Source: Oopsacas minuta
Taxonomy: Eukaryota > Animalia > Porifera
Direction of reading: 5' to 3'
Length of the DNA stretch: 64,000 bases
Assembly (NCBI GenBank): GCA_024704765.1
Contig: JAKMXF010000334.1
Span: 62,001 to 126,000 of the forward strand
Shown here one piece after another: positions 6,301 to 63,799 of this stretch. Position numbers and translations under genes: made by a program. Position 1 is the stretch's first letter; every line of letters begins with the position of its first letter. The notes under the pieces were generated by a model, which saw nothing but the letters and a program-made list of their open reading frames with translations, did not search any database and was not told the DNA's origin.

Positions 6301-9300
6301 ACAACATATCAACTGTATTACCACCAATATTCCCTTAGAATTATTTTCGATTTCATACTAGGCTTGACTTGTTAGAACAGTTGAGACAAAGATCATCAGA
6401 TATAGAAGTTAAACTACTACTATTTGCTATACAGAAGACATCTGATTTTGAGAGACTACTTGCTCAGAGATTCAGCACTCCTGAAAGTGTATGTTCATTA
6501 ACGGAAGTTGGAGGCAGTGAATGTCATAATAATAATAACTTGGGAAACAAAACTAGTATTGACCGAATTTGGAGTTGCCGATTCTCATGGATTAGTTGAA
6601 AACTACTGCCCCTACTTGTTGCTACAGCGTTATATGATCAAATTTATATATCGAACTCTGAAAAAACCTGATGAAAATATCTCGCTCCAATGTATTATAA
6701 TCATTTTTAGAGAATATTGATTAAGTTGCAATATTATTATTATTTCACATAGGAATCCAAATCAGATGTATCCCCATTTATGGGATTAATTTCTAAGTGC
6801 TTTGAGAGTCATTTAGACGTATTTATTGGTGCTCAAGATAAGAATTTGGGTGAACTATTGGATGAGTTTATTGAAGAGATGAAACGTAAAGATTCGAAAA
6901 ATAAAGTAAGAATAATTACTTACGCTTCGTCAAATAGCTTATCGCTTATTGTAAATCATGATGTTCCTGTGATACCTATAAGGGCAATTGGAATGTAGCA
7001 TCTTGTTATTATTATATACATGCACGCTACGCTTGCTTGTACTGCCCAACTTGCGAACTCTTTGTATTTGCTCTTTTTGTATATCGGTTGCTTCGTAACT
7101 GCAATATAATTCCAAATTAGAGTTTGTTGTTAGAATCGAATTTAGTTGGCGAAAAATGTTATTTCCCTTTCCCCTAAGCCAGAGTTTCTCAACCCCTCAT
7201 AGGCTATAGCCACAATTTGTATCACACCCAAATCAACATGCTTGTTCAAGTTTGGTCAAGTTTGATAAAAATGTCCATGGAACTTCAACTTTTTTTGACC
7301 AAAATACGTCATTTGACCACATGTTGAGGTTGAGAAACCCCGCCCTTAGCCAATCAATTTGCATTCTCAGATAGAAATGATGAATTTTCGAATTTTTACA
7401 AACCACATAAGCCATAACTATTGTACTAATTTGTATCTAGGGATCTACTAGTACAGTATTCAGCTCATCAGGAGATTTATTCGTATTCTATAAAAAATGT
7501 TTAGTTCAATGTATTACTCTATCTACTGGTGTTCCATTGCTTCATCTCTCCAATGTATTCAAGAAATATCTGAAAGAATATGCTAACAGGATACTCATTA
7601 GCCAAATTCCTAAGTTAGTAATTACCGATTTATTTATTTAAGATTATTATAGATTAATTGTACTCAGTTATGCTGTAAAGACCTTGTATTCCACGTTTTT
7701 GCGTTTTTGTTATTCGCAAAGTGTTTTTACTCGATTAAAAAGTTAAAGTTACAAGTGTGAAAGTGATTTATCATATGATCAACCATTTTCATACCTTTTG
7801 GCATATACCTATTTTCAAAATGATACCAGAGACTTCGTTTAGTCAGAGTAATCTGGCATATAGATTCTGAGTTTTACATTTTCGATATATCTAGATGATT
7901 CGTCATATGATTAATCATATATTCTCGCTTTAAACTTTTATTTTGTCTGAACATTATGTAGGCTAGCAGTACCGAGTGTCGGAGGAATAAAGTTACTATT
8001 GAAAGAGAGTGAGAGAGATAATTTAACTAAAGAAGAGAGCATGCTAGTATGTGGAATATTATGTACAGCTGATTATTGTCTTGAAACTGCTCAACAGGCA
8101 AGTTCATTAGAATTAATAGTATTAACTAATATCAGAATAATAGAAGTTATTATTACACAAATTTACATATGACAATGTATTGGAAAAATAATTGTAAATA
8201 CGTATTACATTTGTGTGTTGAGACATTTATGTAACGGTCATTAGTATTTAGTGCAGCGTCAAATCACACTATATAAGTTTACCAAGTCTGACGTCAGTCA
8301 AAACTTGTTCTTATCCCTAAAAATTTTTAATTTTACGGTTTATTTATGTCGGTGGCGGTTATTTCTACGAGATCAGATTTGTATTATTAAAACCCTACCT
8401 CCTCAGTATAAAAAGTGACATTTCACTAATCTTGGAAAATGACCCTTCAACACTGAAAAATGTATTGAAAATCTCTCCTACATAAGAAAATTGTTCAAAA
8501 TTTTATCGCCATTAAATTCTCTTATCTCAAGTCTGGTATCATTAAGGGCTGAAAGACCTTGGAGATAGCCTCCTACGCCAAGGCTATTTCCGCCTCCATG
8601 TACCCCTCCCAACTGTTAATAATCTATATAGAGAGTTTGGAGTTTCCGCGAAAATTGAAATTTCCTAACCCTAGTTCAAACCTGTAATGAAACACGCAAT
8701 TTCTTCCTGAGTCCCTTTGTAATACTTACATATATAAACGTAATCATTGGAGTAGACGCTAATTATAATTACGTTGTATTATCAGTGAAATTAATTAATT
8801 AAGGAAATATTTTATGGACAATACTCAAGTAGGAAGTGACTTTCGCCACCAGCTTTTAAGTAATTCCGAATCGAAAATGCCCTTTCTCACTTACTCACGC
8901 TCTGTAGGTGTAGCAGAATTATATTTTCAATAATCATCATTTGTATAAGATTAAGTATGGATGATGTATTAACTTTTGGTTTGGAATTACTCCAGCATAA
9001 TTCCAGTATGATTATCGTTTGAGAAACACAAATCTTACGAATCACTTGTATTTTGCCTGAATTTATGGAAATACAATTTGATTGCGATATTAAAGTTTTC
9101 AATTTTAGTATTAAAATTTTGTTTACGTAATGTTATATATTATTTCATATTTTCATAAGAAAATAGACAATTAATAGTTAGATAAAGATGTCGGTTATTT
9201 GTCATTAGAATTTCAAAACGTCACAAATCATTTTTTGAGTACCTGGTAAGGAAATAACCTGACAACTTATTTGCTTCATATGGTTACGTTATTACTTTCA

Positions 9301-18776: not shown

Positions 18777-20381
18777 TCACAGACAAGTATCTATCATGAT
18801 CCCTTCTTTACTGACACCACGATATATCACACGTCTGTCACTTGTGACAGCTAGACGCTGTACCACACCCTGTCTCCATACTCTAGTCATGGATACCCCA
18901 TCGGAACTGTATATCCCAATGAAACCAACATTTCCAACGAAAATATCACCATCACTTGCAACCGACAAACTCTGCGGTCTGTCCAACTCTTTCGCCGGAT
19001 TGCCAATACTCCCAAATTTGTACCTCAAGTCTCCAGTAGGGCTGTACACGTGTATGCATGGGTAACCTTCATGTAGTACCACTATATCATACGAGGGTGT
19101 TACCGCGATCTCCCTAGGGTGCAAAAACTGTCCCTCCCCATCTTCAGTAGATTTTATCTGAAAAACAACTTTATTGAGATCAGGTGAACACACTAGTACG
19201 CGGTTATTGTTCGTATCTGCTAAAACTATATTGTCTTTCTCAGTCAGTGACAAACCATGAGGGCGCGAAAATACATACCAATCTATCGCAGTGATCTCCA
19301 TGCTACTCTTCAGTTCAATTGAGACGAATCGCAGTGCATTTTTATTAGGAAATGATATGTAATAGCCTGATGGTGCGGCTACAACACTGTGTACAGATTT
19401 TCTTGTTAGACTACGGCCTAATGAACATTTGTGTGCATTTTGTGGGTGTTTAAGATCCATTATGTACAGCGTATTAGTTTCCCAGTCTAATACATGCAAC
19501 TGATTATCAGCTCCTACGTTCAAGCCGTAAGGGGATTGTACACCCATGTTGATTTTCAATAGCTCATCTTGAGGAGGCGTGTTCACCTCAATTATGACAT
19601 GTCCTAATCGTTTGAGTTGGAATTCGATATCTTTATCAATGTTAAATTTAACATCAGGTAGCATAATGACGTCATCTGTTGAAGTTTCGTTTAGTAGTGT
19701 AGAAAATTGATCTCTCATTTCTCCCAATTTTAAAGTGAGTGGGTCTCCTTCTACATCGAGTAATTCATAAGAACTGAGTTCTACTTGTATCTCAATCTTT
19801 CTCTCAGTCGTTGCCTCGAGTATAGCTTGCTCTAGGCGTTCTGCTTGTTTACGTAGATGCGATTCTTGAGTTGCAATTTCCTGTATGACCTTGTTGTAAA
19901 TGTTCTTAACTTTGCGTAGGGCTAGCTCCTTCCTATCCTGCAGTATTTGTATGTATTTGTCGTATTGTGTAGCAATCTGTTGACAGATGTTATTTTCTGC
20001 ATTTCTACATCTGACAATCTGTTGCTCTACACGTGACAGCTGCTGGTTGACAGCAGTCACACGTGATTGACTGTCACGTATTAGATTCCTGAGTGTAACA
20101 CTGGGTGGAGGAACTGCAATTGTTGATAAGTTTATACTGTCCTGACAAACACTAGAATCATCTCTGAGCTCCTGGAATATTCCTGTTGATGACGTCATTG
20201 GTGTACTACAACGACTACGAGCTTCTATCATTTCATTATGTGAGGAGCCGCTAGGAGTACGGTGAGGGGTGCGGTGTCCTGAACGACGTGGAGAGGGGCT
20301 AGATTCACGAGACCGTGAATTGATGAAGGGGAAAAATCGCGGGCGATTGGAATGGGAATTATGTGAGTTGTTATTTTCCAT
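18777..20381 (-). CDS. TRIM-like coiled-coil + NHL beta-propeller protein (534 aa), no RING or B-box, intronless
   Basis: Ser/Arg/Pro-rich N-terminus, coiled coil (~aa 95-195), then NHL blades (SPYGLNV, FSRPHGLSL..VLADTNNNRV, FLHPREIAV, LDRPQSLSVASDGDIFV). Confidence 0.85.
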   Translation of the reverse strand: MENNNSHNSHSNRPRFFPFINSRSRESSPSPRRSGHRTPHRTPSGSSHNEMIEARSRCSTPMTSSTGIFQELRDDSSVCQDSINLSTIAVPPPSVTLRNLIRDSQSRVTAVNQQLSRVEQQIVRCRNAENNICQQIATQYDKYIQILQDRKELALRKVKNIYNKVIQEIATQESHLRKQAERLEQAILEATTERKIEIQVELSSYELLDVEGDPLTLKLGEMRDQFSTLLNETSTDDVIMLPDVKFNIDKDIEFQLKRLGHVIIEVNTPPQDELLKINMGVQSPYGLNVGADNQLHVLDWETNTLYIMDLKHPQNAHKCSLGRSLTRKSVHSVVAAPSGYYISFPNKNALRFVSIELKSSMEITAIDWYVFSRPHGLSLTEKDNIVLADTNNNRVLVCSPDLNKVVFQIKSTEDGEGQFLHPREIAVTPSYDIVVLHEGYPCIHVYSPTGDLRYKFGSIGNPAKELDRPQSLSVASDGDIFVGNVGFIGIYSSDGVSMTRVWRQGVVQRLAVTSDRRVIYRGVSKEGIMIDTCL

Positions 20382-24300: not shown

Positions 24301-27300
24301 AACAATCATGTTGTATATCGATAGTGTGTACTTACAAACAGAAGCATCCATTGTTCCTCTATCACATATAATAATACAATTTTGTTTAGAAAACTGTGCA
24401 AGATCTTCAAATGTCTTCTCCAATTGTAAAATAGTTTTAAGCAAATTAAATTGAAATGAATAGCGTTCAATCTCTGTGAATTCTCTTGGCTTAGGACCTC
24501 CCCTGGAAGTATAAATTCAATAATTACAGAAGTACATCATTTAGTTTAGATCAACCGAACATTGAAATATTCGGTTGCAACCATTTAATGCCAACACAGG
24601 GAATGTAACCCCCAGTAAGGTTCAGAAAGGTGTGTAGAATGCTCTAATGTGCAAATTAAAATTCTTTATAACATATTTTACAAATTTTTAATAAAACAGT
24701 AAAATACAAAATAAATAAACTAGAAACATTGCAATGAATAGTTAGGATTATCAGATATAACAAAAATAATTCCTAATTTAGAGATGCCAATACCGTATGG
24801 ATAGCTGAGTTCTTCTTTCTTCTTTCCCTTACATCCTATGGAGTGAATGAATTCTCCTGATTGTGTGAATATCTTGATACAGTGGTTATTAGTATCGCTT
24901 ATGATAATATTACCGGAGAGGTCGAAACAGAAGAATTGTGGATAACTTAGCAAACAATTTGGTTTATCTCCCTGAGAGATACAAGAGCTGAGATAGTCTC
25001 CATTTCTAGAAAATAAATGTACACATCTAGGACTCCAGTCTAGCACCACTACACAATCTTGAGTAAGCTTAACATCATGAGGATAGTACAGCTGTTTAGT
25101 ACCTAAGTTTGATTTGAATTGTAGAAGTGTAGAGAAGATGGAAACTCTGTGCTTGTCCCTATTCGCTACAAACACATCTCCATTTGTGTCTATACATAAT
25201 CCTCTGGGTAATTTTAACTCTTCTTCTTTACTGTCTGAGTTATCAGTTCTTTTCAGAAGATAAAGTTTGTTCTTACAAAACTTGAACAGAGAGTTATGTA
25301 ATATGTCAGTTATGAAGATATATTCTTTATTCACAACTATTCCGTATGGTTTCTTCAGGATATCTTGACCGAAATTTGTAAGGAATTCTCCTTCAAATGA
25401 CATAACTTGTACTCGACTATTGCCCCAATCAGCTATTTATATTCTATGATTATCTTCATCAAGGAATAGACCAGCACCATTAAGTTCATTCTTACCCTTT
25501 CCGCTCTTACCAGTTATTAGAATAGGTACTTTCTTCAGTGAATAGTTTGTTACCTCCCACTCTTTGACCTCTCCGAATTCTGAGATAGCTGATCGAATTG
25601 TTTGAAGTGTGGGAAAAAGGAAGAGAGGATATGGTAGTTTTGTAGGAGCTTCCAGATCCTGGAGACCTTGTTGATAAAGTCGGGTAGCTTGTTGATGAAT
25701 TGAAATATTTGTGTTTACTTTCAAACTCATCTCTTTCATTTGTTTTCTAGTTTTTTCTAGCTCTTGAATTGCTGCCTTGCGAGTAGTCTCCTTGGTTGTG
25801 TAGTCCTCTCGGAGCTGAGAAAGTTGTCGCAAGATAGCATCCCTCCTCTCAATCAGTTGAGTAATGAGAGGATTGAATGTTTGTAGAATTTCTGTAGCGA
25901 CAGCATCGAATTGTGCCATCTTGTCGAGTTGTATATTCGTGGGCTCATTAGTTGCCATTCCAGCGATTTGATTTATTGATTTTATTCGAAATGAAATAGT
26001 TAGTTTATTCAGACTATATCTTATACTTGTGTAACTTGAGCAATGAGCATGCCATTATACCTCAATGGTTGTTATGGAAAAACACCCCTGTTTTTGGCTA
26101 GAACGTACGAGAGATATCTCTTACTAATTAATTATGTGATTTTATGATGGTTGCATTCCGTCTAAAGTTAGGTGGTTTTCAACAATTCAGATTACATTAA
26201 AACATGAATTACGAAGCAAGTTTGCTTCTAACCACAGTTCAGGTGTACATACCTTATTAAGATATTATTAAATGAATTCAGTATTTTCAGTAGAACTCGG
26301 TTAATACTTACTAAATCTTTACAAACCAAAATTAATCAAGTTTCCCATCAATTTTCTGGAATTTGTATTTGGGTAACTCAGTTTTGAAGTAAGTACTTGT
26401 TTACTTCCTGAAAGGGTACATCTTTATCCGAGTTATACTGTAATTTATTTATTCATTGCAGGGCTGTATCAACTCATTTTCTTGAATGAATTAAATGAGT
26501 TGATAACGCAAATCGGGCCTGGAGGTATGTAAAGTAGGTACATTATCTGTTCTAAGAATAGGAAATTATCTAGAGAAATGATGTAACAATGTATTTTGCT
26601 TCTGTAGTAGCACTACAATGCATCAATTATAATGTTTTAACTCATCATTTCGAGTTAAAGTCTTGTTTAATGACTCCCTTCGCGACCAAATAGTTACAAA
26701 GCTATTTAGCTAAATTAGTAATTGTTGATGTCAAAAACCACAATATTCTACGTAGAAAACAAACCTTTCCATTACCATATAATGCATACCGTATACCAAA
26801 TTACCAATACTGTTAATTGCTCTTGAATATATTTTGTTTTTCAAATCAATGCTCGAAAATATAAACAAACAACAATTACAGTAAGGATAACTCACGATAG
26901 AAGAATAGTAGCTGTTTCAGGTACACTGTACACCTAAACAAGTATTGTTTGCATAAATGTAATAGTCAAACCTCTTTGGAAGATTAACGAGGACTCCGTT
27001 TAATGCAGCGGTTCCTGGTAGTCCACATGCAATCTTTTGCAATCTATGAGATAGGACCCACAAAATATGTTAAAATTGGTATAGGGGTCCACGGGTGCAA
27101 AGGTTGGGAACCGCTGGTTTGATACATACGCTATTATATCAGTAAAATTCGTATTTTCTTGACCTGCATAGCTCATGGTATTCCATATACCGAATTACGT
27201 ATTTAAATACACAACGCTAATTCATTCTAAAAATAAATACACAAACCTTCCAACCAATATTCTCGAAGAAAGAACGTAGTTCAGTAATTGTAGTAGTCTT

Positions 27301-43376: not shown

Positions 43377-44873
43377 TTATCTCATATTTACAAATATTTC
43401 TATGTCAATGCCTCCATCTTTACAACATCCTTCATTAATTTCAGCTTGAGAGAACGTAGCAATGTTTCTATTTTTCCAAAAATGATAAGAATAATAATCT
43501 GTTTTCCCTACCTGAAATAATTCACTGCAATATTCCAATGTACCACCAAGGTTGTCATGGCAAATCAATCGGGTAAGGAATTCTACTCTGAAAGGCCATT
43601 TGAGTTGATCTTTCTTAGGTACAATCGGAGGATTGAAATTTATATGTAAGTTCTCAGAAACATGCATCTTGAACCTGAAATCATAAGCAGCTATTTTCCA
43701 TGTCTGGGAATGATATAATTTTTCTTTTTTGAATGGAAAGTCTATATTAGCTATTCTCCATTGTAGCTTGGTGGTATTAATGAGAGAATAGAGGGTTACT
43801 ACGTTATGAGTGAGATGTTTTATTGTTTCTTTCTGCTTCATAACAATATCTTCCATTGCATTGAGTTTCATTTCTGTCTGTTTAGACAATCGTTCCATCA
43901 TATCATTCTGTTTCATAACAATCACTTCCATCGCGTTTAGTTTCAATTCTGTGTGTTCAGTCCTCTTCTCCTCCAAATGCTGATAGAGTTCCTTCCTCTT
44001 GATTAGTCCTAGTTCACACTTGTACTTTATAAACGGACACCCTACCTCCTTCTCTACACACTCCTCCTCTATGTGTCGTGCCATATCCTCACGACAAGCC
44101 ACTTTGCCACATTTTAGTTCACATGATAGTATCATTTTGGGACACTCTTCCATATGGTTACTCATATCACAAGCTTTGAAACCTATGTGACAATGCTCAC
44201 AAGGTATCATACGTTGTACACACTTTGTATTCACATGCATATCAAGCTCATCACGTGGTAGCTCTATCCCACAGCCTAGTTTGCAATGCTCTACCATACG
44301 ACCACAATCTTTATTTAGATGATGTGGCATATCCTCGCGACATAGCACTACGCCACAGTTTAGTTCACATTTTAGTGGTATTTTTTGACACTCTTCATGA
44401 TGGTTGGATAAGTCACAAAATTTCAATTCTTTCTGACAATACTTACACAGTATTTCCCGAAATAAACACTTTTCACTCATATGAATATGTACTTCATTAC
44501 GTGGTAACACTATGTCACATCCTAGTTTACACATCTCATCTACTAGATCACACACAGCAAGATGTTTCTCACATTCACCTAGTGTTCCTAGCCAATCACA
44601 GCCCCGTTTGTATAAGGGACACGAGCACTTGAGTGAGAGAACTATGTTCCTCACATGTATGTTCGGGTGTGACTGTTCTTCTCCCTTCTCACAACAGGAA
44701 CAAAATTGTTCCCCACTACTAGATAGACACGCTTCTCTCAGTATTCCGTGACAACGGGGACAAACCAGTAAAGTACAATCTCTCTCTGATAAATTCTCAA
44801 TCAAAATATCTCTCCTATGACCTGTAGCTACTCCTCCTTTATCAGCTTGTAGTTGTTTGATGTTTTCTGCCAT
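43377..44873 (-). CDS. TRAF-like protein (498 aa): degenerate RING, multiple TRAF zinc fingers, coiled coil, MATH domain; intronless
   Basis: CPLYKRGCDWLGTLGECEKHL, repeated C..GC...(V/L)xRxE...H...C zinc fingers, LQWRI..., LKWPFRVEF, IDIEIFV. Confidence 0.9.
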   Translation of the reverse strand: MAENIKQLQADKGGVATGHRRDILIENLSERDCTLLVCPRCHGILREACLSSSGEQFCSCCEKGEEQSHPNIHVRNIVLSLKCSCPLYKRGCDWLGTLGECEKHLAVCDLVDEMCKLGCDIVLPRNEVHIHMSEKCLFREILCKYCQKELKFCDLSNHHEECQKIPLKCELNCGVVLCREDMPHHLNKDCGRMVEHCKLGCGIELPRDELDMHVNTKCVQRMIPCEHCHIGFKACDMSNHMEECPKMILSCELKCGKVACREDMARHIEEECVEKEVGCPFIKYKCELGLIKRKELYQHLEEKRTEHTELKLNAMEVIVMKQNDMMERLSKQTEMKLNAMEDIVMKQKETIKHLTHNVVTLYSLINTTKLQWRIANIDFPFKKEKLYHSQTWKIAAYDFRFKMHVSENLHINFNPPIVPKKDQLKWPFRVEFLTRLICHDNLGGTLEYCSELFQVGKTDYYSYHFWKNRNIATFSQAEINEGCCKDGGIDIEIFVNMR

Positions 44874-45041: not shown

Positions 45042-46370
45042 ATGGCAGCTAATTCTGTTGTACAATTAGTCTCTGAGCATGGGCCAGATTTGTGTAGAGT
45101 TAGAGGTGAGGGAGGATTAGTTAGAGGTTTTAGGAGAGATATTCTAACTGAGAATTTATCAGAAAGAGATTGTGCTCTTCTGGTTTGTCCCCGTTGTCGT
45201 GGAATATTACGAGAGGCGTGTATCTCGTTTGGTGGTGCACACTTCTGTTTATCTTGTACCAAAGGAAACGAGCAGACACACCCGAATACACACGTAAGGA
45301 ACACGATATCATCACTTAAGTCTACATGTCCCTTGTCTACACGGGGCTGTGAATGGCTAGGAACACTTGGAGAATGTGAAAACCATCTTGATATGTGTAG
45401 TAACGTGCATGAGATATGCAAACTAGGATGTGATATAGTGTTACCACGTTATGAACTCGTTAACCATATGAGTGAAAAGTGTCTACAACGTGTAATTCCC
45501 TGTGAACACTGTGAGAAGAATTTCAGAGTGTGTAATATGTCTAGCCATATGAATGATTGTCTCAAAATGCTACAGACATGTGAACTAGGATGTGGCATAC
45601 TTGTATGTAGTGAGGACATGGAGCGACACCTAGAGGAGGAGTGTGTAGAGAAGAAGGTAGGGTGTCCGTTTATAAAGTACAAGTGTGAAGTAGGACTAAT
45701 CAAGAGGAAGGAACTCTATCAGCATTTGGAGGAGAAGAGGACTGAACACACAGAATTGAAACTAAACGCGATGGAAGTGATTGTTATGAAACAGAACGAA
45801 ATGATGGAACGAATGTCTCAACAGACAGAAAAGAAACTCAATGCAACAGAAGATATGTTACTAAAATTGACTCGTAAAGTGGAATCGTTAACCAAAGAAA
45901 GCGATTTTAATCAAGAAGAAATTATCGTTGAGGATAACACTTTACTATGTACTCTCCCAAATGCCACAAAACTACAATGGAGAATAGAAAAGATTGAGAA
46001 TATGATGAAACCTCGTCTTTCTTCAACTTTTTCTTTTTCCCACAAATTTCAAGTTGACGGATTTATATTCAATTTTCAGCTTCAATATTCAGATGGATTA
46101 CGAATTAACTTATGCCCTCATATTGGATCAAATTATGATATATTACATTGGCCCTTTAGGGCTGAGTTTCTCACATATTTGATTTGTCATAGCAACCGTA
46201 AGAGTACCTTAGAATTCAAGAGCCCAACAATTAATATCAATAAAGAGGATTATTACTTTCACAGTATTTGGAAGGACAGAGAAATTGCTTTATTCCCTAG
46301 AGCTTCTATAAAACCTGAATTTATCAGAGATGGAGCTATTCACTTAGAAATTTTCGTAATTATGAAGTAA
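45042..46370 (+). CDS. TRAF-like protein (442 aa), head-to-head paralog; intronless
   Basis: Same architecture with fewer zinc fingers: LQWRIEKI, LHWPFRAEF, IHLEIFV. Confidence 0.9.
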   Translation: MAANSVVQLVSEHGPDLCRVRGEGGLVRGFRRDILTENLSERDCALLVCPRCRGILREACISFGGAHFCLSCTKGNEQTHPNTHVRNTISSLKSTCPLSTRGCEWLGTLGECENHLDMCSNVHEICKLGCDIVLPRYELVNHMSEKCLQRVIPCEHCEKNFRVCNMSSHMNDCLKMLQTCELGCGILVCSEDMERHLEEECVEKKVGCPFIKYKCEVGLIKRKELYQHLEEKRTEHTELKLNAMEVIVMKQNEMMERMSQQTEKKLNATEDMLLKLTRKVESLTKESDFNQEEIIVEDNTLLCTLPNATKLQWRIEKIENMMKPRLSSTFSFSHKFQVDGFIFNFQLQYSDGLRINLCPHIGSNYDILHWPFRAEFLTYLICHSNRKSTLEFKSPTININKEDYYFHSIWKDREIALFPRASIKPEFIRDGAIHLEIFVIMK

Positions 46371-52233: not shown

Positions 52234-55200
52234 CTAAGGTTTCTTTTCAGACAGCTGATAGAGGTGATTCTTAATCTGCTTCAAACTTGAAGTACCTACT
52301 CTAAACGGCATGTGTATTGTTGGCGGTACATCTGATATCTCTTCTTCCTGTCCTGTTGTAAAAATAGATTTATTTCAATAAACAGCGATCGCCAAAGGTT
52401 ACTTTCCGTGTGTCTATCTCACGGCTGTCTAGATCTCAACCGGACCAATATTTGGACTGCTAAGTGCTAATACAAATAGTATTAATGTACTGGACAAACT
52501 TTTGTGTGCTCATATTTTTTACAAGTCAATTTGACAAATTGAAATCTGCTTGCCACGACCTGGATACAAGTATTACCTACATTTATTTAATGCTCAATTA
52601 ACTGCAAGGCTAAACTGTTAACTATTAACAGCATTTTCACTTTCCAGTGTATGTATTTCAGGCTGTTATGCTTAGTTTTCTAACCAACCTAGTGTTTCGT
52701 TAAGATTTCCTAATGAAGGAGAATAGTGTTTTCTTAATTTTGAGAGTTTCATTCCTATATCAAATTCCGCTAAAAGAATATGAATATAATTGATGTGCAT
52801 TATTTAAAATATCTCTCAAGTCTTGACTAATTCTCAGGGTTGCCGTGGGAATGGAAATCCTATGGGAATTCCGATAGAGATCCTGTGGAATGGGATGGGA
52901 GTTGAAATTCCGTTCCCACTGCAACCCTCCTAATTCTTAACATCAGCGTTACACTTGGGACGTCTTCGATTAAGTTCTCATATAATTGTTCAATAGATAT
53001 TAGTACTTCCATTAATATGTACAAAGATATATATGTTAAGGATTATACATAGCTGTATGAAACGATCCGTAGGTCAGGTTTCAACCGGGTGTGAAATGCT
53101 AATACAAATAGTATTAGTCAAACGCTTTTGTATAGGTCAGCCTGGCCAATTGAGATCTGCTCGCTACGACCTTGTCATATGATCTACCCTATTTATTAAT
53201 AACATTAACGTACACTGTTTTCTGGTAGTTCTGAATAATGAGTTATCTAATTCAAAACTAAAGTCAGTCAGATCGTCTAAGCTGCCAGTACTATGTAGTG
53301 GTAAGGCAAAGAGAGACTCGGATGAAGGGCTAAAGAAATATAAGTAGAAATGGTTATAACACTACCTTGTAGGGTGTAGTTCGAAATATTCATCTATAGA
53401 TGCCAACCTGACTTCTCACCAACCCTTAAGATTCCTTCTAAAATCCGTGATAGCGGGATTTCTGTATTAAAAATTAAAAAGCAATAGACATTTCGCTTCG
53501 CGATGAACTCGGCGTAAATCATAATTTTTGAAGTTCATTTACCACACAAACAACAATAAATTTGTATTTGACGGACTTCTCTCGTGCGTAAATAAAAATC
53601 TCAGAGCTAGGAGAATTGCTTCTTCTGCATAATTATATAATGCTAGTTACACCCTTGATTTATCATGCGAATTCTGATTCAGGTTAGATGTTCTAGCTCA
53701 CACACCTACGGTAATAATTCTGGTCAATCTGAAGATTGGTCAGGTCACGTGTTCTTCCTTTATAAAGTACATAACTCGATAAAGAGTTGGCTTAATAATA
53801 TATATCCGGAATTTCACTGTAACTATTACCAAATATTTTGCTGAATATCATCGCCCTTGGTTTCTACTATCTCCAATTCATCATTTAGATTCAATGTCTT
53901 TAGTCCAGGAGAGAAATACACTATAACATATAGCTTGTCTGGATCTGTAGATAACTTAGTAGAATCCTCATATATATGGAATATTATTTGTGTGTTGTAA
54001 TTGAGTTCTGATATTTTGTCTAATTTTCTTCTTGCTTCTGCCCATTCTTTATCTGCTTCCTATGAATGTATTTAGTATAATTACAAGAGTTGCTTATTAC
54101 AATATGTGATGTCTAGCATTATAAGTTTATTTACAACTGTATAGCTAAGATGTTGAGATGTTTCGGGATGGAATATTCTCATCGCAAACTTTTCAAGGAT
54201 CGAATGCCATGGATTGTCAAATTTAAGACCGATCTTGAACTTTCCTTAACTTAACAATACTAGAATTTCCAGGCAAACTTCGGAAGAATATAATATCAAT
54301 CGTAACCACTCACTTGTAATCAACCCCAGATCAGTTTCTAGGGGTGCTTGACTTACACATATATTAACCAAACTAGAATTTATTAAATTTATTCAAAAAG
54401 ACTTACTTCCCATAGACCTCCATACTTGATAATATTGAATAGAGAATGTACATGAGACTCGCTAGTGAAGTAAAGTCGAGTTCTGACATGTCTCTTTGGA
54501 GATTCTACATCAGTTGAGAAACTAGAGAAGTGGAAATTTCGTGGTAACCAGACCGCTATATTTCGCACGACCGCGCGGGAACTTATGAATATGCTCAAAT
54601 TATAAATGATTATTAGTTAGAGAAATCAGTGATGAAGTACAGGCAGCCCTCGCCGGTCGCTGTTTCGATTATTCGCGGTGTTTGTTCCGAGTTATGTCAG
54701 TTTGGTTGAAAATTTTGCAATTTTTATATTTGGTATGCATTACTATGGCGAAAATGTATTTTTTCTCGATAAACAGCTTTGGACTTTTTATCTAAATCAA
54801 CACATCTACTGTTTTTGTTATATTTTGATCACGTGAAAACAGAAACTTTTCTTATTAAAAATAAGCAAGTTTTACTCTCTTATGCTCACACAAGTAATAT
54901 TTTTAACTTAGTGAATACCATTAACCTTTTAAAACTCATAATTATTGCTTTATTATACATTCTTATCATATTTAGTAACACCACAATTCTCATTGAATTA
55001 ATGTCTTACCGTTCGCGATTTTGCCATTCGCGACAATTCTCAGGAACGTAGCCCCCGCGAACGACAAGGGCTACCTGTATTACAAATTTACAACACACAC
55101 AAACCACCAATAATTCTTAATGCTACTAGATCAATTAGAATAATTAATTAATACCCACAAGACATCTACTTTGAACTCGAGACGAAAACATTCCCTAATT

Positions 55201-58200
55201 TCAAGTTATTACCCGAACAACCATTAAGGTATCATGGTATGCTCATGTTACACAAGTATAAATAGAATTAACTAAATCTATATCTTTCAAATAAATCAAA
55301 CTAACTACTAATCGCTGGAATGGCAACTAATGAGCCCACAAATATACAACTCGACGAGATGGCACAATTCGATGCTGTCGCTACAGAAATTCTACAAACA
55401 TTCAATCCTCTCATTACTCAACTGGTCGAGAGGAGGGATGCTCTCTTGCAACAACTTTCTCAGCTCCGAGAGGACTACACAACCAAGGAGACTACTCGCA
55501 AGGCAGCAATTCAAGAGCTAGAAAAAACTAGAAAACAAATGGAAGAGATGAGTTTGAAAGTAAACACAAATATTTCAATTCATCAACAAGCTACCCGACT
55601 TTATCAACAAGGTCTCCAGGATCTGGAAGCTCCTACAAAACTACCATATCCTCTCTTCCTTTTTCCCACACTTCAAACAATTCGATCAGCTATCTCAGAA
55701 TTCGGAGAGGTCAAAGAGTGGGAGGTACCAGACTATTCACTGAAGAAAGTACCTATTCTAACAACTGGTAATAGAGGAAAGGGTAAGAATGAATTTGATG
55801 CTGCTGGTCTATTCCTTGATGAAGATAATCATAGAATATACATAGCTGATTATGGCAATAGTCGAGTACAAGTTATGTCATTTGAAGGAGAATTCCTTAC
55901 AAATTTCGGTCAAGATATCCTGAAGAAACCATACGGAATAGTTGTGAATAAAGAATATATCTTCATAACTGACACAGAACATAACTCTCTGTTCAAGTTT
56001 TGTAAGAACAAACTTTATCTTCTGAACAGGACTGATAACTCAGACAGTGAAGAAGAACAGTTAAATAACCCTGGAGGATTATGTATAGACACAAATGGAG
56101 ATGTGTTTGTAGCGAATAGGGACAAGCACAGAGTTTCCATCTTCTCTACACTTCTACAATTCAAATCAAACTTAGGTACTAAACAGCTGTACTATCCTCA
56201 TGATGTTAAGCTTACTCAAGATTGTGTAGTGGTGCTAGACTGGAGTCCTAGATGTGTACAATTATTTTCTAGAAATGGAGACTATCTCAGCTCTTGTATC
56301 TCTCAAGGACTTGGAACAAAATTGTTTGCTAAGTTATCCACGATTCTTCTGTTTCGACCTAGCTAGTAATATTATCATAAGCGATACTAGTAACCACTGT
56401 ATCAAGATATTCACACAATCAGGAGAATTCACACACTCCATAGGATGTAAGGGAAAGAAGAGAGGAGAGTTCATCGATCCACACAGTATTGGCATCTCTA
56501 AATTAGGAATTATTTTTGTTATATCTGATAATCCTAACTATTCATTGCAATGTTTCTAGTTTACTTTTACTATTCATTAAATTAATGTCATAAATTTACA
56601 CAATGGGTCATAATTAGTAAATATCAGTTGGATTCGGAACTACGTATTTGAATAATGGATTTGATAGAAACGCTTATCGTATCTCCTAATCGAATCTACA
56701 TTCCCGTATATACCAATCTAGCTGGAGCTGTGTGGCGCTGTAAGTTATCCAATGAGGTCCAGGACAAAAGCTATAATGGTTACCTTAGTTACCACAATAA
56801 TTCCAGATCATGGTGAAATCCTAATATCCGACTAATCCTCTTGGATCTGCCACTAGACATGCTTTGGGGCAACGATTTACTAAGGAGGGTCTCCCTATAG
56901 TCTCCTTATGCCCTAGTGGCGACGTTCCTTCCTTAATGTCCCTACGCTTATTCTTAATTCTACAAGTCACTGTTTATGAGGGCGAACGTTCATTTCCAAA
57001 TTTGACTATGAAAAGTTGTATTGCCCTGTATAAGCGTTGGGGTATTTCCTGCACGATAAATATGCACCGGGCACAAGAATTTATTTCACAATTCGTAGTG
57101 AGAGGGAGTCTATACTTATAATATTTAGAGCGACAATTTACTGCTGAATATAAGAATTGTGGATTTGTAAATCATTTGAATTGATACAAAACACTCATCA
57201 AATCCAAAAGGATTTCTTGGTGATTTGCAGGGCTCTCTCAACCTTGCAACCTTGAAATGTACGATTTAGTAATTATTTTCGACGAGATCGTGAGAATTGA
57301 GAGCACTGGATTTTGATTTGTAAGGATTTGATGATTTCTTAGAATCTGGATTTGATTTGACTAAAGAAATACAAATACATCAGATCCACAACTCTGCTTA
57401 CGAGTACAGTGGATACATGTTATAAGAACATCGTCGGGAATTGCAAATAATGTTCTTATAAGGGGCATGTCGTAAACAGAAGATATCGCTTTATAATTAT
57501 ATAGGAACATCATACTGGTAAAACGGTTACCATATACCCCTATATAATTTGTGTTGGATATAAGAACACAAGTATGGAACATACTAGATATAATAACCAT
57601 CCTCTGAAAAATAACTCGCATATTGGAAAATTATATCTAAGACCCTAGGGTCCTAGAGTGTAATTTCGCTCTAGGACACTATATTTAGTGTATTTTAAAA
57701 ACTTATTATATCAGTCTAGTGTATTTTGATTAGTTTCAAACAGGGTCCCAGAAATAATGCTAGGACCCTAGGGTCCTGAGAAAAACTCCTCCTCATATAT
57801 TAATGTATAACGTATGCCGGTTATACGAATACGTCGGTTATGAGAATTTAATTTGCTATTCCCAAGTGTGTTCTTATAACCGATATTCTTATATCCGCAT
57901 CTAATGGATATACAAGTGTGTATTATTATGCTAAGAATATCAGGTATAGTGGAACTAAATAATCGCACTCTATAAATTTCAACTTTCAAGTTCCAGAGAA
58001 AACAGTTCATATACAAATTAAAGAATTGCCTCGCTATCTCACTAAATATCCTACAACACTAACCGCTAACATATATACAGCTGCAAAACATAAGCTACAA
58101 TAATTCACCAGCACAAAACATCTCTACATTGTGCTCTAACCAAAACATTCCAATATTTTCCAGGTATTACCATAGCAACCATTAAGGTATCATGGTATGC

Positions 58201-61200
58201 TCAAGTTACACAAGTATAAGATAGAGTTAGAATTAACTAAAATATCATTCGAATAAACAAAACCTTACTAATCACTGAAATGGCAACTAATAAACCTATG
58301 ATAAAACAACTCAACAAGATGGCACAATTCGATGCTGTCGCTACAGAAATCCAACAAACATTCAATCTTCTCATTGCCCAGCTGATCGAGAGGAGGGATG
58401 CCCTCCTCCACCAACTGTCTAAGCTCCAAGAGGACTACACTATCAAGGAGACTGCTCGCAAGGCAGCAATTCAAGAGCTAGAAAAAACTAGAAAACAAAT
58501 GGAAAACACGAGTTTAAAATTTAATGCAAACATTCCAGTACATAACCAAGCTACTATGGTGTATCAACAGGGTCTCCAGGATCTGGAAGCTCCTACAAAA
58601 CTCACATATCCTCTCTTCCAATATTCCACACTACAAACAATTCAATCAGCTATCTCAGAATTCGGGGAGGTCCTAGAGTGGGAGGTACCAGACTATTCAC
58701 TGAAGAAAGTACCTATTCTAATAACTGGTAATAGAGGAAAGGGTAAGAATGAATTTGATGCTGCTGGTCTATTCCTTGATGAAGATAATCATAGAATATA
58801 CATAGCTGATTATGGCAATAGTCGAGTACAAGTTATGTCATTTGAAGGCAAATTCCTTGAAAGTTTCGGAAAAGGCTTCCTAAAGGAACCATACGGAATT
58901 GCTGTTAAGAAAGAATATATCTTCATCACTGACACATCGCATAACTCTCTGTTCAAGTTTTGTAAAAACAAACATGAAATTATGAACAGAACTTGGAGCA
59001 CAAGCAGTGAAGAAGAACAGTTAAATAACCCTGGAGGAATATGTATAGACACAAATGGAGATGTGTTTGTAGTGAATAGAGACAAGCACAGAGTTTCCAT
59101 CTTCTCTACACTACTACAGTACAAATCAAATCTGGGTGTTAAACAGCTGCACCATCCTCAAGATGTTAAGCTTACTCAAGATTGTGTAGTGGTGTTAGAC
59201 TGGAGTCCTAGATGTGTGCATTTATTTTCTAGAAATGGAGACTATCTCAGCTCTTGTATCTCTCAGGGACAGGATCAAAATTGTTTACTATGTTGCCCAC
59301 GGTTTTTCTGTACAGACCTAGCTAGTAATATTATCATAAGCGATACAGGACATCATTCTATCAAAATACTTACACAATCAGGGGAATTCATACACTCCAT
59401 TGGAAAAGGTAAGGGGGAGAAGAGAGGAGAGTTTAATCGTCCGTATGGTATTGGAATTTCTAAATTAGGATTAATATTTGTTCTCTCTTTTAATCCTACC
59501 TACTCATTGCAATGTTTCTAGTTCATTAATAATTAATATGTATGTGTATTCATTAAATTAGCCTCGTAAAGTCGTAATATATTCAATGTAGTAGCATGCA
59601 GTCAGTATAATAACGACTACATTAGTGATATATTATAATCCCATAGACTAATACAAACTATCCAGATACATATTGTGATGCAAATAGTATTCCTCGCGTT
59701 GAACAGAAGTGTTAACAGGGACTGTTAGGGTTACAGTCACAGTCCTACCAAGATGTGTTTTCAAAAGTACATAGAGTAGCCTCATAGTGTAATGAAGTTT
59801 CTCAACCTGTGGTCATATGTCCAAACTTTCCTTTTAGGCTGATTATATGATTTTGGTCTAGTCCAAGTTCTAATCCTATGGCCATTTCGATTTGAAAAAC
59901 AGGCCGACATGGGTGTGGTCAAGTCATGATACACAATTTATACTAATCATGGCCATCACGCGAATTTACCTATTCATATCTCCTACCTGGCAAAGTGTCC
60001 CGATTAATCGGAACCAACTAATTACAAAACTCACTTTGGATTTAGAAGATGGAAACATTCCTGTTCAGCATAAGAGTTGTTTTCAATGTGTAAGAAATCT
60101 GATACTATTTTCTTCAGTAAAGGATTACAAATAGTCTGCGCTATCCTTATTTTCTCATCTACAGTGATTCCATACTCCTACGTACAGATAGAATAGTATT
60201 AGTTATGTCTGTCTGGGCATTATCTTGGACTATATGGGTAGGGGTAGAGCCAGGGTTGAGTTCAAGTTTTAAATATTCAACTAGAAATACGAGTGCAACG
60301 GAAAATGGCGAAAGTGCGTAGTTAGTACAATTGTACTTGAACCCAACCCTGTGTGTACCGGTGTAGGTCGGTGGGAAATAAAGGTCATATTTAGGTACGC
60401 CATTAACCACATGTACATAGCTGAAGGAAGTGGGGAGTGACCTTTACCCAAATTTTCAATAATGTATTATATGGTTACAGTGCTAATAAGCTGCTCCACT
60501 TTTCATAGCCATACCAATAATCTTCTCACCAATTTTCGCGGGCTCCGTACCGGCTTGTCCACTTGTAATAGGTTTTACGGCATTGTTAAATATACGCCTG
60601 CAATAGTCGCCCTACTTCTTTAGAGTTTCTTCTATAAAAATACTTACTTGAGGTATAATAATATCTGCAAGAGCTTTAGACTTATTGTGAAGTTTTGCTG
60701 CATCTTTAAACAAATATTCTCTATATTAATTAAAATATGTATGTTAGTTATTAGCTAACTTAAAGCTTCAAAGTGGATTATATCTAAACAAAAAGTTGCA
60801 CCATTTTGTAAAGCAAAAGGATCGTTGCTTCACAAATGGTCTAATAACTTAAGACAAGGAAGGAGTGTATGTAATTTGCCGGAGTTTCAGTTAACGTTTC
60901 AACTGCTCCTTCATCGAAAATTCCAAATACCCGCTTATATCTAATTCTGAAATCGTACAAATATGATTCCAAACCGTCAAAGTAAGATATTTAATGGATT
61001 ATATCGAATAATTAGCGCGGTCCCTTGAGCTACGATATAACATGAGTTGGCTTATATGTAATTCTTAGATAGAAATGAATTATAATCTCACTTGTTATGC
61101 ATGATATCATACTTAATGCAATCGTAGAGGTCTGGTATCTTGCTTATGTCAAAAGTGTTACTCTTTAAATCGTAGAAGTCCTAATTAAATATATGTGTAT

Positions 61201-63799
61201 TTAGATAAAATATTAACAACAGTAAAATGAACTCATAATTAGCCCAAACTGATTGCTTTATTATCTCACAAACAATCTATTAATGAAATGAGATTAATTT
61301 TTGATCGAGAAATTATTTTACCTTTTTCAACTTTTGCCATCTTTGAATCATCATTTCTAAAACTTCTAAACGTCTCCCTACACAACAAAATATATATCAT
61401 TCTAAGATAATTGCCAACCCTCTGAGGATCCCTGGAAAATCACAGAATTTTACAAGAATTGCAGGAAGACTTTTGAATTCATGTAAATCCTGAAATTCCA
61501 ATTTATGGATGTGAAACAATTTTCGAAAATCCCGGAAAATATGTGTTGGTAAGTATACATTACAGAAAAGGACTGACATGATTCTTTCGTATTAATAAGC
61601 TATCACTTTCTAATTTTTGTGAAACCAACCTTCGCATATTCAACGCGGGTTTAGAATTATATTAAATCGTGCTTCAAATTTTTCATGGATATGGACTGCA
61701 TTTTGTTTGGTAAATATTTCGCATAATCGCGAATTCGCAAGCAAAATTCACGTAAAATATGATTTGCTAATAGACCCCTCTACAGTATATATGCGTATAT
61801 GCGACTTTCATACCATCTTCTAACGAGGATTCTCTCAGTTCTTCTAGATGTTTCACCAGTGAGTGTACTCTCCTGTTAACCTTAATACACTGATCATATG
61901 GATTCCCTATTCGCTTAATTGCTGCTAGTAAGGAGGGAGATCTTGTCGATGCTAACTATTATGATAAATGTATGTGAATATAATCATGTGATCTGATAAT
62001 ATTGGAAGGAATTTGTTGATTTACTATTTAGTAAGGTTTATTACTGTAAATTGAGATTTACTGAACCAGCCAGTCTCTCGGGTCATGGAAAAGCTGACGG
62101 TTTATCTGAAAAGTATCCTCTTACTAACCTGCTCAATCATACCATCATTAAATATCTGATTCGTTTTCATTACTTGATGGAGTCGATTCTTTGCACTAAT
62201 ATTATAGTTAAAACTGATGTGAATACCAGAAAATATAATTACTTACTTAGCCATTATAATATTATCATTACTTGAGGTGTCCAGTAGTGAAGTGCTATCA
62301 TCATCACACTTTACAAGATGAACTAAAGTAGATGGGAGACTCCCTTCTAATTCTAGCATTCCCTATACAGCGTAACATCGATTTAGTAAAGTCGAAGGGG
62401 CATCGCAATCATTACTAAATCGATGATATTTACTATGCATTTTGATGGACGAGATAAGGAATAGTTTTAGAAGTTTTGTAATATGGTTTGGAGTTCAAAT
62501 TATCAATATGGAAAAGTTTGAAAACACTACCTGACTAACTCAGACGGTAGAGTGATATCTTTTCAAAATTTTATGAATCTTTTTGAAATTTGCTAATAAA
62601 TTCAGATTGTTCATTGTTTTAATGTTGAATAATTAAATTCTACATGTTGTATTCAAGTGTATAGTTTGTATTTATACCTTTACGAATGCTGCTGCTGTCA
62701 TTTGTACCCGCCCCTCATCAGAAGCGTATATCTTCAAATCATGTCTGTAAGTGGAATGTAACCGTAGGAATCCAGACCCAAGAATTGAGTTATAGTTTTC
62801 TAATATAATCAATAATGATGATACCTTCATAACAGATATGTCAAAACAAACAAACAAACATCAAAATACATTACCATGATCTCCAGGATATCTAAGTCTG
62901 AAGTATCTTCCTAACTCTTCTGCCTGTGCTTTACCCGTTTTCGTTAACTCTCCACCCCATTTCAATATCAATAAGAAGGAATGTGAATTCGGGTCTTGAT
63001 TACCTATGAATAGGACAAGAAGGGAAATACATATTGCTACAGTGGAGGCTGTGCAAAGGCTGTGGTTCGCGATCGGTTGGTTCAAATGACCTTTGTGCAT
63101 GCATAGCAATAATTTCCACCATACACAATACAACATTGTTGCATGTAACTAATCAGCATCGTGTATGTTGAATTTTCCATGCAAAGCATTGTACCCATAT
63201 TGGCAAGAGTTTCATGCAACAATGCTGTAAGCAACTTGCTGATGGTCATAGGATCATGTTTTATTTTCCTGCAACAATGCAATTTTCATGTAACAAAAGT
63301 TGCATAGTGTACGGTAGGATATACGAATACATGTCTAACGTATATGTAATATTAATACTGTTATTTTGATGTACCATATTTCCCTGAATAAACGCTCGAG
63401 CGTTTATTCTTTTCGTGGGGCATTTTTTCGTACAAATTCTTTACCATTTTATGATACAAAAAGATTCTGAGAAACAAATTATTCTAATTTGTTGCAAGGA
63501 CAAATGAGGCTTAAATTCATCAAGATTATTCTAGAGGTGGTGATTAATTTTTAAACACAGTCTTAGAGCCTTTTTCTTGCCCCGGCGCTTATTCAGGGAA
63601 ATACGGTGTTTGGAATTCACGGTTTCCTTGGAACGACCAATAGATTAATATCGCTTTACTGAACCTGATTTATTTTCGTAAATTTACATTTCCCCAAGAC
63701 GTGGGGGATAATATAACAGAAAGTTACCTAATCTTCCTACCTTTCTTCAACTGTCTCTTCATTTGAATCTTTCTATTAATCCCAGAAAACTTCCCATAC
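52234..63799 (-). CDS. PPIP5K: Inositol hexakisphosphate / diphosphoinositol-pentakisphosphate kinase (C-terminal histidine-phosphatase half); 5' part lies beyond the window
   Basis: Phase-consistent exons 63799-63741 ([12 protein letters not shown]), 63003-62875 ([14 protein letters not shown]), 62799-62678 ([27 protein letters not shown]), 62362-62247, 62195-62129, 61955-61814, 61377-61322, 61180-61092 ([15 protein letters not shown]), 60720-60648, 60177-60035, 54521-54407 ([18 protein letters not shown]), 54059-53830, last exon 52352-52234. Tail exons near 53329-53214, ~53000-52930 and ~52757-52692 are less certain. Confidence 0.93.
52836..52928. mobile_element. MITE with AGGGTTGC..GTGGG TIRs
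   Basis: AGGGTTGCCGTGGGGAATGGAAAT ... ATTCCGTTCCCACTGCAACCCT. A related end lies at ~18615-18635. Confidence 0.6.
54640..55077. mobile_element. Pogo/Tigger-like non-autonomous element, 438 bp
   Basis: TA|CAGGCAGCCCTCGCCGGTCGC ... GCGAACGACAAGGGCTACCTG|TA (TA TSD, ~21-bp TIR). Confidence 0.8.
55320..56559 (+). pseudogene. Coiled-coil + NHL-repeat gene, copy B, single +1 frameshift; nested antisense in a PPIP5K intron
   Basis: At ~56308-56317 it reads GGA CTTGGAA CAAAAT versus GGA CAGGAT CAAAAT in copy C (one extra base). The downstream frame (56254-56559) restores the NHL tail ending NYSLQCF. Confidence 0.85.
58166..58179 (+). promoter_or_regulatory. RFX X-box-like motif upstream of NHL copy C
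   Basis: ATTACCATAGCAAC, 13/14 to GTTACCATAGCAAC, ~100 bp upstream of ATG. Confidence 0.45.
58280..59521 (+). CDS. Coiled-coil + six-blade NHL-repeat protein, copy C (413 aa, intact), intronless, nested antisense in a PPIP5K intron
   Basis: N-terminal coiled coil; blades [64 protein letters not shown]. Confidence 0.9.
   Translation: MATNKPMIKQLNKMAQFDAVATEIQQTFNLLIAQLIERRDALLHQLSKLQEDYTIKETARKAAIQELEKTRKQMENTSLKFNANIPVHNQATMVYQQGLQDLEAPTKLTYPLFQYSTLQTIQSAISEFGEVLEWEVPDYSLKKVPILITGNRGKGKNEFDAAGLFLDEDNHRIYIADYGNSRVQVMSFEGKFLESFGKGFLKEPYGIAVKKEYIFITDTSHNSLFKFCKNKHEIMNRTWSTSSEEEQLNNPGGICIDTNGDVFVVNRDKHRVSIFSTLLQYKSNLGVKQLHHPQDVKLTQDCVVVLDWSPRCVHLFSRNGDYLSSCISQGQDQNCLLCCPRFFCTDLASNIIISDTGHHSIKILTQSGEFIHSIGKGKGEKRGEFNRPYGIGISKLGLIFVLSFNPTYSLQCF

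Follow-up and report, generated by a model that had tools for sequence, protein, structure and literature searches.

We analyzed a 64,000-nucleotide stretch of the genome of the glass sponge Oopsacas minuta (contig JAKMXF010000334.1, positions 62,001 to 126,000 of the forward strand; hereafter the window), with positions numbered from its first letter. The window has a low GC content of ~35%, is eukaryotic DNA poor in introns, and carries three copies (A, B and C) of one intronless gene for a coiled coil followed by an NHL propeller. Copy C (58280-59521, + strand) is a 413-codon open reading frame (ORF) for a protein of 413 amino acids, and it is the sole uninterrupted copy of the three. Copy B (55320-56559, + strand), delimited by DNA alignment and frame analysis, is present in the assembly as two overlapping ORFs (55320-56366 and 56254-56559) because a 1-base insertion in a TT at 56311-56312 breaks the frame. 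In copy A (24720-25958, - strand) of this gene, codon 174 (25437-25439) is an in-frame TAA; the four other clade members (B, C and the loci L003 and L004) have TAC there. The original prediction, made from this sequence before any database search, had placed its comparison of the three copies at 55320-59521; that interval holds B and C, but A lies outside it. It mentioned neither the TAA of A nor the insertion in B.

Judged by its sequence, copy C is certainly intact, and it is the only such copy in the window. For the B-C region, we compared the assembly with public contigs of four sequencing runs (X1-X4) from one sample. Runs X1-X3 have no coverage of the site of the B frame break, and the sole read-derived contig over 56311 (run X4, depth 1060) is one letter shorter, which gives an open frame reading GLEQN. 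This reading matches none of the other paralogs compared. Because the only read contig restores the frame, the frameshift of B is either an assembly error or one allele, and B is probably intact in the animal. Copy A is probably a pseudogene. Its branch carries 18 non-synonymous codon changes (the stop included) versus 3 synonymous ones, several of them at otherwise conserved positions, which is consistent with decay.

The domain content of the protein is simple. Copy C matches the Pfam NHL family (PF01436) with E=8.9e-19 and 67 bits versus a cut-off of 20, with nothing else above its cut-off, and both ORF pieces of B also exceed the NHL cut-off. An AlphaFold2 model of C, built from an alignment of 55 homologues, has helices at residues 13-80, 86-102 and 111-127 with moderate confidence (the helical part, residues 13-127, is encoded at 58316-58660, + strand). 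These are followed by a six-bladed propeller at residues 141-413 (58700-59518, + strand) with a predicted local distance difference test (pLDDT) score >90. The 24 strands between residues 147 and 412 form six four-stranded blades that are closed by the N-terminal strand. When the model was used as a Foldseek query, the NHL domains of Thin, LIN-41/TRIM71, TRIM2, TRIM3, Mei-P26 and Brat ranked first (E 4e-21 to 1e-15), with template modeling scores, normalized by target, of 0.83-0.87 for the top matches (the NHL domains of Thin, LIN-41/TRIM71 and TRIM2/3). By sequence, the best solved relatives are the NHL domains of TRIM3 and TRIM2 (phmmer E=5e-30).

The N-terminal part is modeled as a helix. 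Pfam searches of C, B and the N-terminal 140 residues found no RING, NACHT or NB-ARC domain. There is likewise no B-box (PF00643) match in the protein, and the 17 B-box matches in the genome are all at other loci. No signal peptide-like N-terminus was evident when the protein sequence was read directly. Against Pfam, the N-terminal 140 residues gave only sub-threshold coiled-coil-like matches, and against the Atlas they gave nothing at or above 0.9, with B-box clusters at 0.77-0.80 as a lead only. No sequence homology to a TRIM coiled coil was found in this part. Across paralogs, the ORFs open only 5-14 codons before a conserved MATN start (13 codons in C). An upstream RING or B-box module was considered and ruled out, given ORFs that lack both and B-box loci that lie elsewhere in the genome. 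The proposal of a RING-less coiled-coil-NHL family is thus borne out.

Prediction of a homodimer for residues 1-140 gave an ipSAE interface score of 0.61 versus 0.04 for the best control. Among proteins solved as pairs of one chain, 21 of 30 attained the mark for this score in calibration, compared with none of 23 that were solved as single chains. At least 55% of the contacts agree between runs, and the partner pLDDT is at least 60. The predicted contacts (42-24, 21-46 and 32-32) are those of an antiparallel register. On the strength of this prediction, the coiled coil may form an antiparallel homodimer, which is the TRIM arrangement.

Every blade string that the original prediction quoted is present in the translations, given here in the order A/B/C. 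Blade 1 reads ELNGAG/EFDAAG/EFDAAG and DWG/DYG/DYG, blade 2 TDIL/TDTE/TDTS, blade 3 LKLPRG/LNNPGG/LNNPGG, blade 4 YYPHD/YYPHD/HHPQD, blade 5 SYPQ/SYPR/CCPR and DTNN/DTSN/DTGH, and blade 6 LSYPYG/FIDPHS/FNRPYG. Given the topology of a four-stranded meander, one face of the propeller (here called the top) carries the D-A and B-C loops, and the A-B and C-D loops are termed bottom loops. Among the 65 propeller residues that vary between the three copies, 41 are in D-A/B-C loops (of 98 such positions), 18 in strands (of 121) and 6 in A-B/C-D loops (of 47). Fisher tests give p=2.7e-7 for top loops versus the rest and p=2.8e-4 for top versus bottom loops. A finer class of 30 motif positions comprises the two residues before and the one after the Pro of each xxPxG turn and the two after each blade Asp. 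Of these, 20 vary, versus 45 of the 243 other positions (p=1.2e-7). Both the proposed concentration of changes in top-face loops and their clustering around the turn and after the Asp therefore stand.

These copies belong to a large family. A six-frame search of the 61.5 Mb O. minuta assembly with copy C yielded at least 101 related loci, all with E<=5e-43, that were scored out of 910 first-look candidates. Nearly all of the scored loci are open single-exon frames of ~400 codons, and a subfamily ~300 codons long has only the NHL part, without the coiled coil. The nearest relatives of C form a clade, g1 (A, B, C, L003 and L004), with 77-82% amino-acid identity to it. The sister clade, g2, comprises eight genes (L006-L013) that are 50-53% identical to C. 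There are also 238 matching proteins outside the O. minuta genome, and those listed come from ENA assemblies. Two of these assemblies (ERZ25071281 and ERZ25069837) carry tandem arrays of coiled-coil-NHL genes that are syntenic with the window. One array site is beside VPS53 and PLOD, which is the place of A in O. minuta, and the other is between genes for an Arf-like GTPase, PP2C and a TRAF-like protein. These syntenic arrays indicate a family common to related sponges with lineage-specific copy numbers, and the family is apparently specific to glass sponges.

We examined codon evolution with our own Goldman-Yang F3x4 code, using site classes M0, M1a, M2a, M7, M8 and M8a and optimizing all branch lengths on IQ-TREE topologies. 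Sites were called selected at naive empirical Bayes (NEB) posteriors >0.95 and are numbered as in C. In the eight g2 genes, whose pairwise synonymous distances (dS) are 0.03-0.20 and whose whole-gene ratios of non-synonymous to synonymous change (dN/dS, or omega) are 0.5-1.5, M2a was preferred over M1a with twice the log-likelihood difference (2dlnL) at 131.3 and 9.3% of codons at omega 7.6, and M8 over M7 with 2dlnL 134.5. The selected sites are 27, 152, 162, 179, 219, 267, 268, 292, 294, 308, 329, 339, 341, 356, 357 and 404. Ten genes from the syntenic arrays of the two other assemblies gave 2dlnL 165.6 for M1a versus M2a, with 6.4% of codons at omega 8.4 and selected sites 178, 179, 203, 219, 222, 268, 270, 284, 291, 292, 331, 339, 341, 356, 378, 387 and 389. 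For the five g1 genes, the same comparison gave 2dlnL 26.7 with 0.6% of codons and two sites, 220 and 250. The likelihood-ratio statistic did not exceed 6.0 in null simulations on a single tree. It did not exceed 12.7 in simulations of extreme recombination, in which eight segments had randomly permuted relationships.

A tree-free check with Nei-Gojobori counts, for structure classes set beforehand, agrees with the site models for g2. Its dN/dS is 2.22 at the 30 motif positions (bootstrap 1.16-4.57) and 1.58 for all top loops (1.07-2.48), versus 0.43 for bottom loops and 0.47 for the N-terminal part. The corresponding g1 values are 0.91 (motif), 0.87 (top loops), 0.27 (bottom loops) and 0.34 (N-terminal part).

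These data bear on the possibility that there has been no adaptive diversification at all, with the loops being merely the least constrained surface and the window copies being decaying pseudogenes. Such an account would accommodate the TAA of A and the excess of non-synonymous changes on its branch, the frameshift of B, an A-B dN/dS of 1.17, the 48-49% of g1 codons that fit omega=1, and loop-class ratios among A, B and C that are not above 1. However, the equally exposed bottom loops have a dN/dS of 0.27-0.43 and hold no selected site, omega is 7.6-8.4 in two sets of intact genes, the same positions recur across independent sets, and the sole read contig over the break in B restores its frame. 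Neutral evolution of the loops was rejected for the family on two grounds, the conservation of the bottom loops and an omega well in excess of 1. This alternative is already largely refuted at the family level, and we consider it improbable overall.

A different concern is that the omega signal might be an artefact of paralogs that exchange sequence by gene conversion and are then analyzed on one tree. Exchange itself is evident. The pattern of sites across the clade identifies B as a gene-conversion mosaic of A-like and C-like tracts: at codons 151-160 in the blade-1 D-A loop (55772-55797, + strand), B equals C, and A matches the outgroup paralogs L003 and L004; at codons ~248-253, the blade-3 xxPxG turn LNNPGG (56058-56073, + strand), B again equals C, and A resembles L003; and at codons ~334-350 in the blade-5 region (56318-56365, + strand), B equals C and L004, and A matches L003. 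The star-like g2 tree and the raised synonymous divergence at hypervariable codons of g1 would also fit such an artefact. Yet the permuted eight-segment null reached at most 12.7 versus the observed 131 and 166, and the tree-free dN/dS of g2 at motif positions chosen a priori is 2.2 with a lower bound of 1.16. Conversion as the sole source of the signal was rejected after the permuted-segment simulations, and we regard this explanation as the most improbable of those considered here.

The selected sites map to one side of the propeller. The D-A/B-C loops hold 25 of the 27 sites selected in the propeller and the A-B/C-D loops none (p=1.5e-10). The 30 motif positions account for 20 of these sites (p=2e-17), and 7 recur in both of the independent gene sets (p=4.6e-6). 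Blade by blade, the ~25 selected residues sit just before or after the xxPxG Pro and just after the blade Asp, and the strands, bottom loops and coiled coil are conserved. Residues 355 (a blade Asp) and 308 of C align in phmmer coordinates with positions 177 and 131 of the TRIM2 chain, which would correspond to D640 and N594 provided that residue 744 is the last of the 281-residue chain. Both of these TRIM2 residues have been placed on the top surface at its central groove; in LIN-41, this is the RNA-binding face (PMC9634614). By this alignment, the D-A and B-C loops probably form the top face around the central groove, which is the ligand face of TRIM-NHL proteins.

What such a face might bind is suggested by its composition. 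Compared with the remaining propeller positions, the selected ones show an excess of Trp (11-fold), Tyr (4.9-fold), Met (4.0-fold), Arg (3.4-fold), His (2.8-fold) and Glu (2.0-fold). Across 13 paralogs, the 25 selected top-loop positions have a net charge of between -3 and +3. Surfaces rich in Trp, Tyr, Arg and His are typical of protein-binding hot spots. Because of the Tyr, Trp, Arg and His enrichment and the range of charge across paralogs, protein ligands seem more likely than RNA.

The main competing explanation is that these proteins are RNA-binding regulators of the Brat or LIN-41 type whose top face has been diversified for different RNA motifs, such as transposon or viral RNAs or many endogenous mRNAs. 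Their closest folds and sequences are indeed RNA-binding TRIM-NHL domains, Arg is among the residues enriched at the selected sites, and the top face is the RNA face in those proteins (PMC9634614; see also PMC5908797 and PMC4015489). Against this, Glu is enriched too, Tyr and Trp dominate, and the selected positions carry no consistent charge, whereas the TRIM71 top face is described as strongly positive (PMC9634614), a comparison made here by residue charge rather than surface potential. We therefore judge the RNA-binding alternative to be unlikely, though less so than the neutral and conversion accounts. The original prediction had equated the top loops with the RNA face of Brat and LIN-41; the TRIM2 anchors support the same face, but the residues at the selected sites speak against a simple RNA-binding surface of that type.

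Taken together, it is likely that A, B and C are members of an intronless family of more than 100 genes, each specifying a coiled coil and a TRIM2/3-like propeller, that serves as a germline-encoded repertoire of diversified binders. In this scheme, each gene would encode a cytosolic protein in which an N-terminal coiled coil is joined to a six-bladed NHL propeller of the TRIM2/3 type, with neither RING nor B-box. Recurrent positive selection on ~25 residues of the D-A/B-C loops would diversify one propeller face, and antiparallel homodimerization would allow each molecule to present two copies of one variable face. The result would be a repertoire of intracellular binders with paralog-specific, probably protein, ligands. 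The driver of selection would most plausibly be something that changes fast, such as parasites, viruses, mobile elements or non-self tissue.

Several observations weigh against this interpretation. For A, B and C alone, the motif-class dN/dS is 0.68 (95% 0.32-1.76) and so is not above 1, and the value for the five-gene g1 clade is 0.91. The hypervariable codons of g1 and of A/B/C also have higher synonymous divergence (0.32-0.34 versus 0.13-0.17), which is what imported conversion tracts or multiple hits would be expected to produce. The site models are our own implementation with NEB posteriors rather than codeml or FUBAR, the g2 tree is internally poorly resolved (bootstrap 40-52%), and each gene set comprises few genes (5, 8 and 10). 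The assignment of a top face rests on strand topology and two TRIM2 anchor residues, not on model coordinates. Finally, the passing dimer score may in part be the model's memory of TRIM coiled coils. Thus, the three copies by themselves do not prove selection, and the positive evidence comes from the wider family. The original prediction of diversifying selection on the top-face loops holds at the family level, with omega 7.6-8.4 at 6-9% of codons in two independent sets and a loop dN/dS above 1 at the g2 motif positions, but for A, B and C it is weak, with two sites in g1 and a loop ratio below 1.

The flanks of these genes offer some insight into how the family expands. Paralogs are homologous over the ORF and, beyond it, only over ~110 bp before the ATG and a few bases past the stop. 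Even A and B, whose dS is 0.036, share no more than this. Among the g2 paralogs, L010 (G000:C356:32427-33653) is otherwise open but has ATA where all others have an ATG start, and its dS from its inverted neighbor L006, located 20 kb away on the same contig, is 0.03. The limited homology, the mosaic structure of B, the decay of A and the loss of the L010 start together point to birth-and-death evolution with conversion, in which genes arise by local and dispersed duplication, exchange short tracts and are lost.

The conserved upstream block spans 55218-55324 (+ strand) in B, with CAACCAT at ~-102 and TATAAA at ~-63 from the ATG, and 58176-58284 (+ strand) in C, with CAACCAT at -104 and TATAAG at -65. 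A module of CAACCAT at ~-100 and TATAAR at ~-64 from the ATG is present in 16 of 26 paralogs examined (loci L001-L030), versus a background expectation of ~0.02 per 250 bp, and its carriers include NHL-only subfamily members with <50% protein identity. In g2 genes, the block also holds TGACGTA, a candidate CRE/bZIP-like site. Genome-wide, the strict pattern has 13 sites versus 2 control matches. It marks only this subfamily and its neighbors, and its use as a counter of the whole family was dropped.

Other features of the window were noted. Copies B and C sit antisense within the span of a PPIP5K-like histidine-phosphatase gene, whose His_Phos_2 exons (54389-54598, 62672-62857 and 62861-63136, - strand) flank them. 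Between B and C, contig depth rises several-fold at 57576-57897 in three DNA-like runs, and many loose ends and replaced letters occur in contigs at 57440-57869; the former stretch may be a dispersed repeat or a polymorphic insertion. Across 55000-59800, run X4 has a depth of 10^3 to 4x10^4 over the NHL coding parts versus 8.6 over the spacer, whereas the three other runs are flat at 55-170. Run X4 thus looks like an RNA library, which would mean high transcription of members of this clade; its contigs neither separate the paralogs nor rank their expression. A divergent pair of paralogs (43377-44873, - strand, and 45042-46370, + strand) encodes TRAF-type zinc-finger-like Cys/His repeats with a MATH-like C-terminus, and a zf-TRAF gene is found at the syntenic place in a related assembly (L032, 15256-16587).

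A different NHL protein of 534 amino acids is encoded at 18777-20381 (- strand), at a distance of 4 kb from copy A; its N-terminus is rich in Ser, Pro and Arg, and it also has a helical part and matches NHL weakly. In a related assembly, its orthologue (L031, 526 amino acids) has been duplicated, and the copies alternate with coiled-coil-NHL genes along a single tandem array (2243-3823, 7228-8616 and 19096-20241). Given this alternation, the two gene types appear to duplicate as a unit. In a related assembly (L033, 14433-16856), an 807-amino-acid hAT-type transposase ORF (DUF4371, Dimer_Tnp_hAT) lies between the NHL array and PLOD, and this ORF is absent at the corresponding place in the window.

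The sponge family shares several features with the TRIM-NHL proteins (TRIM2, TRIM3, TRIM71/LIN-41, TRIM32/Thin, Brat and Mei-P26). The six-bladed NHL propeller is of the same type, as judged by the Foldseek and phmmer matches described above, a coiled coil precedes it (predicted to form an antiparallel dimer in the sponge family), and ligands bind on the top surface, around the central groove, as they would in the sponge proteins. Unlike TRIM-NHL proteins, however, the sponge proteins have neither RING nor B-box and thus no ligase module of their own, and their genes have a single exon. More than 100 paralogs are present in one small genome, versus a few conserved TRIM-NHL orthologues, and the sponge top face is hypervariable and, by the charges at selected sites, not uniformly basic.

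Known recognition systems offer further parallels. Restriction factors of the TRIM5alpha/TRIM22 type use a coiled-coil dimer to display a C-terminal recognition domain. Positive selection acts recurrently on the surface loops of that domain, and the genes form clustered paralogs with gains, losses and conversion. Their recognition domain is B30.2/SPRY rather than the NHL of the sponge family, they keep RING and B-box, and each family has a handful of genes. In HNWD-type WD40 propellers, the selected positions are on one face. The HNWD, het-e and het-d NLR proteins of the fungus Podospora anserina likewise constitute an intracellular repertoire of hypervariable beta-propellers in a syncytial organism, shaped by positive selection and paralog exchange (PMC2873952 and PMC11761791). 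Those WD40 propellers come with NACHT and effector domains, and their repeats are exchanged both inside a gene and from one gene to another, whereas the sponge family has no NACHT and varies between whole paralogs. Among sponges, PMC8242945 lists NHL repeats among the domains of NLR- or TIR-type receptor architectures in the demosponge Halichondria panicea. These receptors are multi-domain, whereas the O. minuta family has only a coiled coil and NHL, and the likeness is one of domain listing. NHL proteins go unmentioned in the genome papers of O. minuta and Aphrocallistes vastus, and a literature search for hypervariable or expanded NHL families found nothing relevant.

In operational terms, two marks of a diversified recognition repertoire are a large lineage-specific multigene family with clusters, pseudogenes and sequence exchange, and positive selection focused on the presumed ligand-binding surface; a third would be paralogs with different ligands and expression that responds to challenge. 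We observe the first in the at least 101 loci, the arrays, the broken copy A, the startless L010 and the mosaic B, and the second in the distribution of selected sites. The immune or antiviral reading of the original prediction is an analogy, and an immune, antiviral or allorecognition role is plausible. Two TRAF-like genes are present in the window, and this neighborhood is no evidence for an immune role. It is also possible, if doubtful, that the family supplies glass sponges with hundreds of germline-encoded, intracellular and dimeric NHL binders, each with a hypervariable top face, for recognition of non-self, parasites or mobile elements in a syncytial animal. The family would then be an animal counterpart of the fungal hypervariable WD40 het/NLR proteins, built on a TRIM-NHL scaffold that lost its ligase module.

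Sponges branch near the base of the animal tree, and glass sponges are syncytial. In a syncytial body, foreign cytoplasm, viruses and mobile elements have to be recognized, if at all, within one common cytoplasm. The more than 100 intronless genes are a visible share of a 61 Mb genome, and in them the scaffold is nearly constant as ~25 residues on one face change under strong selection. In other organisms, diversified receptor repertoires have been recognized by this signature of a constant scaffold with a single selected face. If the proposed role is correct, NHL would join LRR, Ig, SPRY and WD40 as a scaffold for diversified recognition, and the family would provide tractable natural variants for learning how NHL top faces encode specificity.

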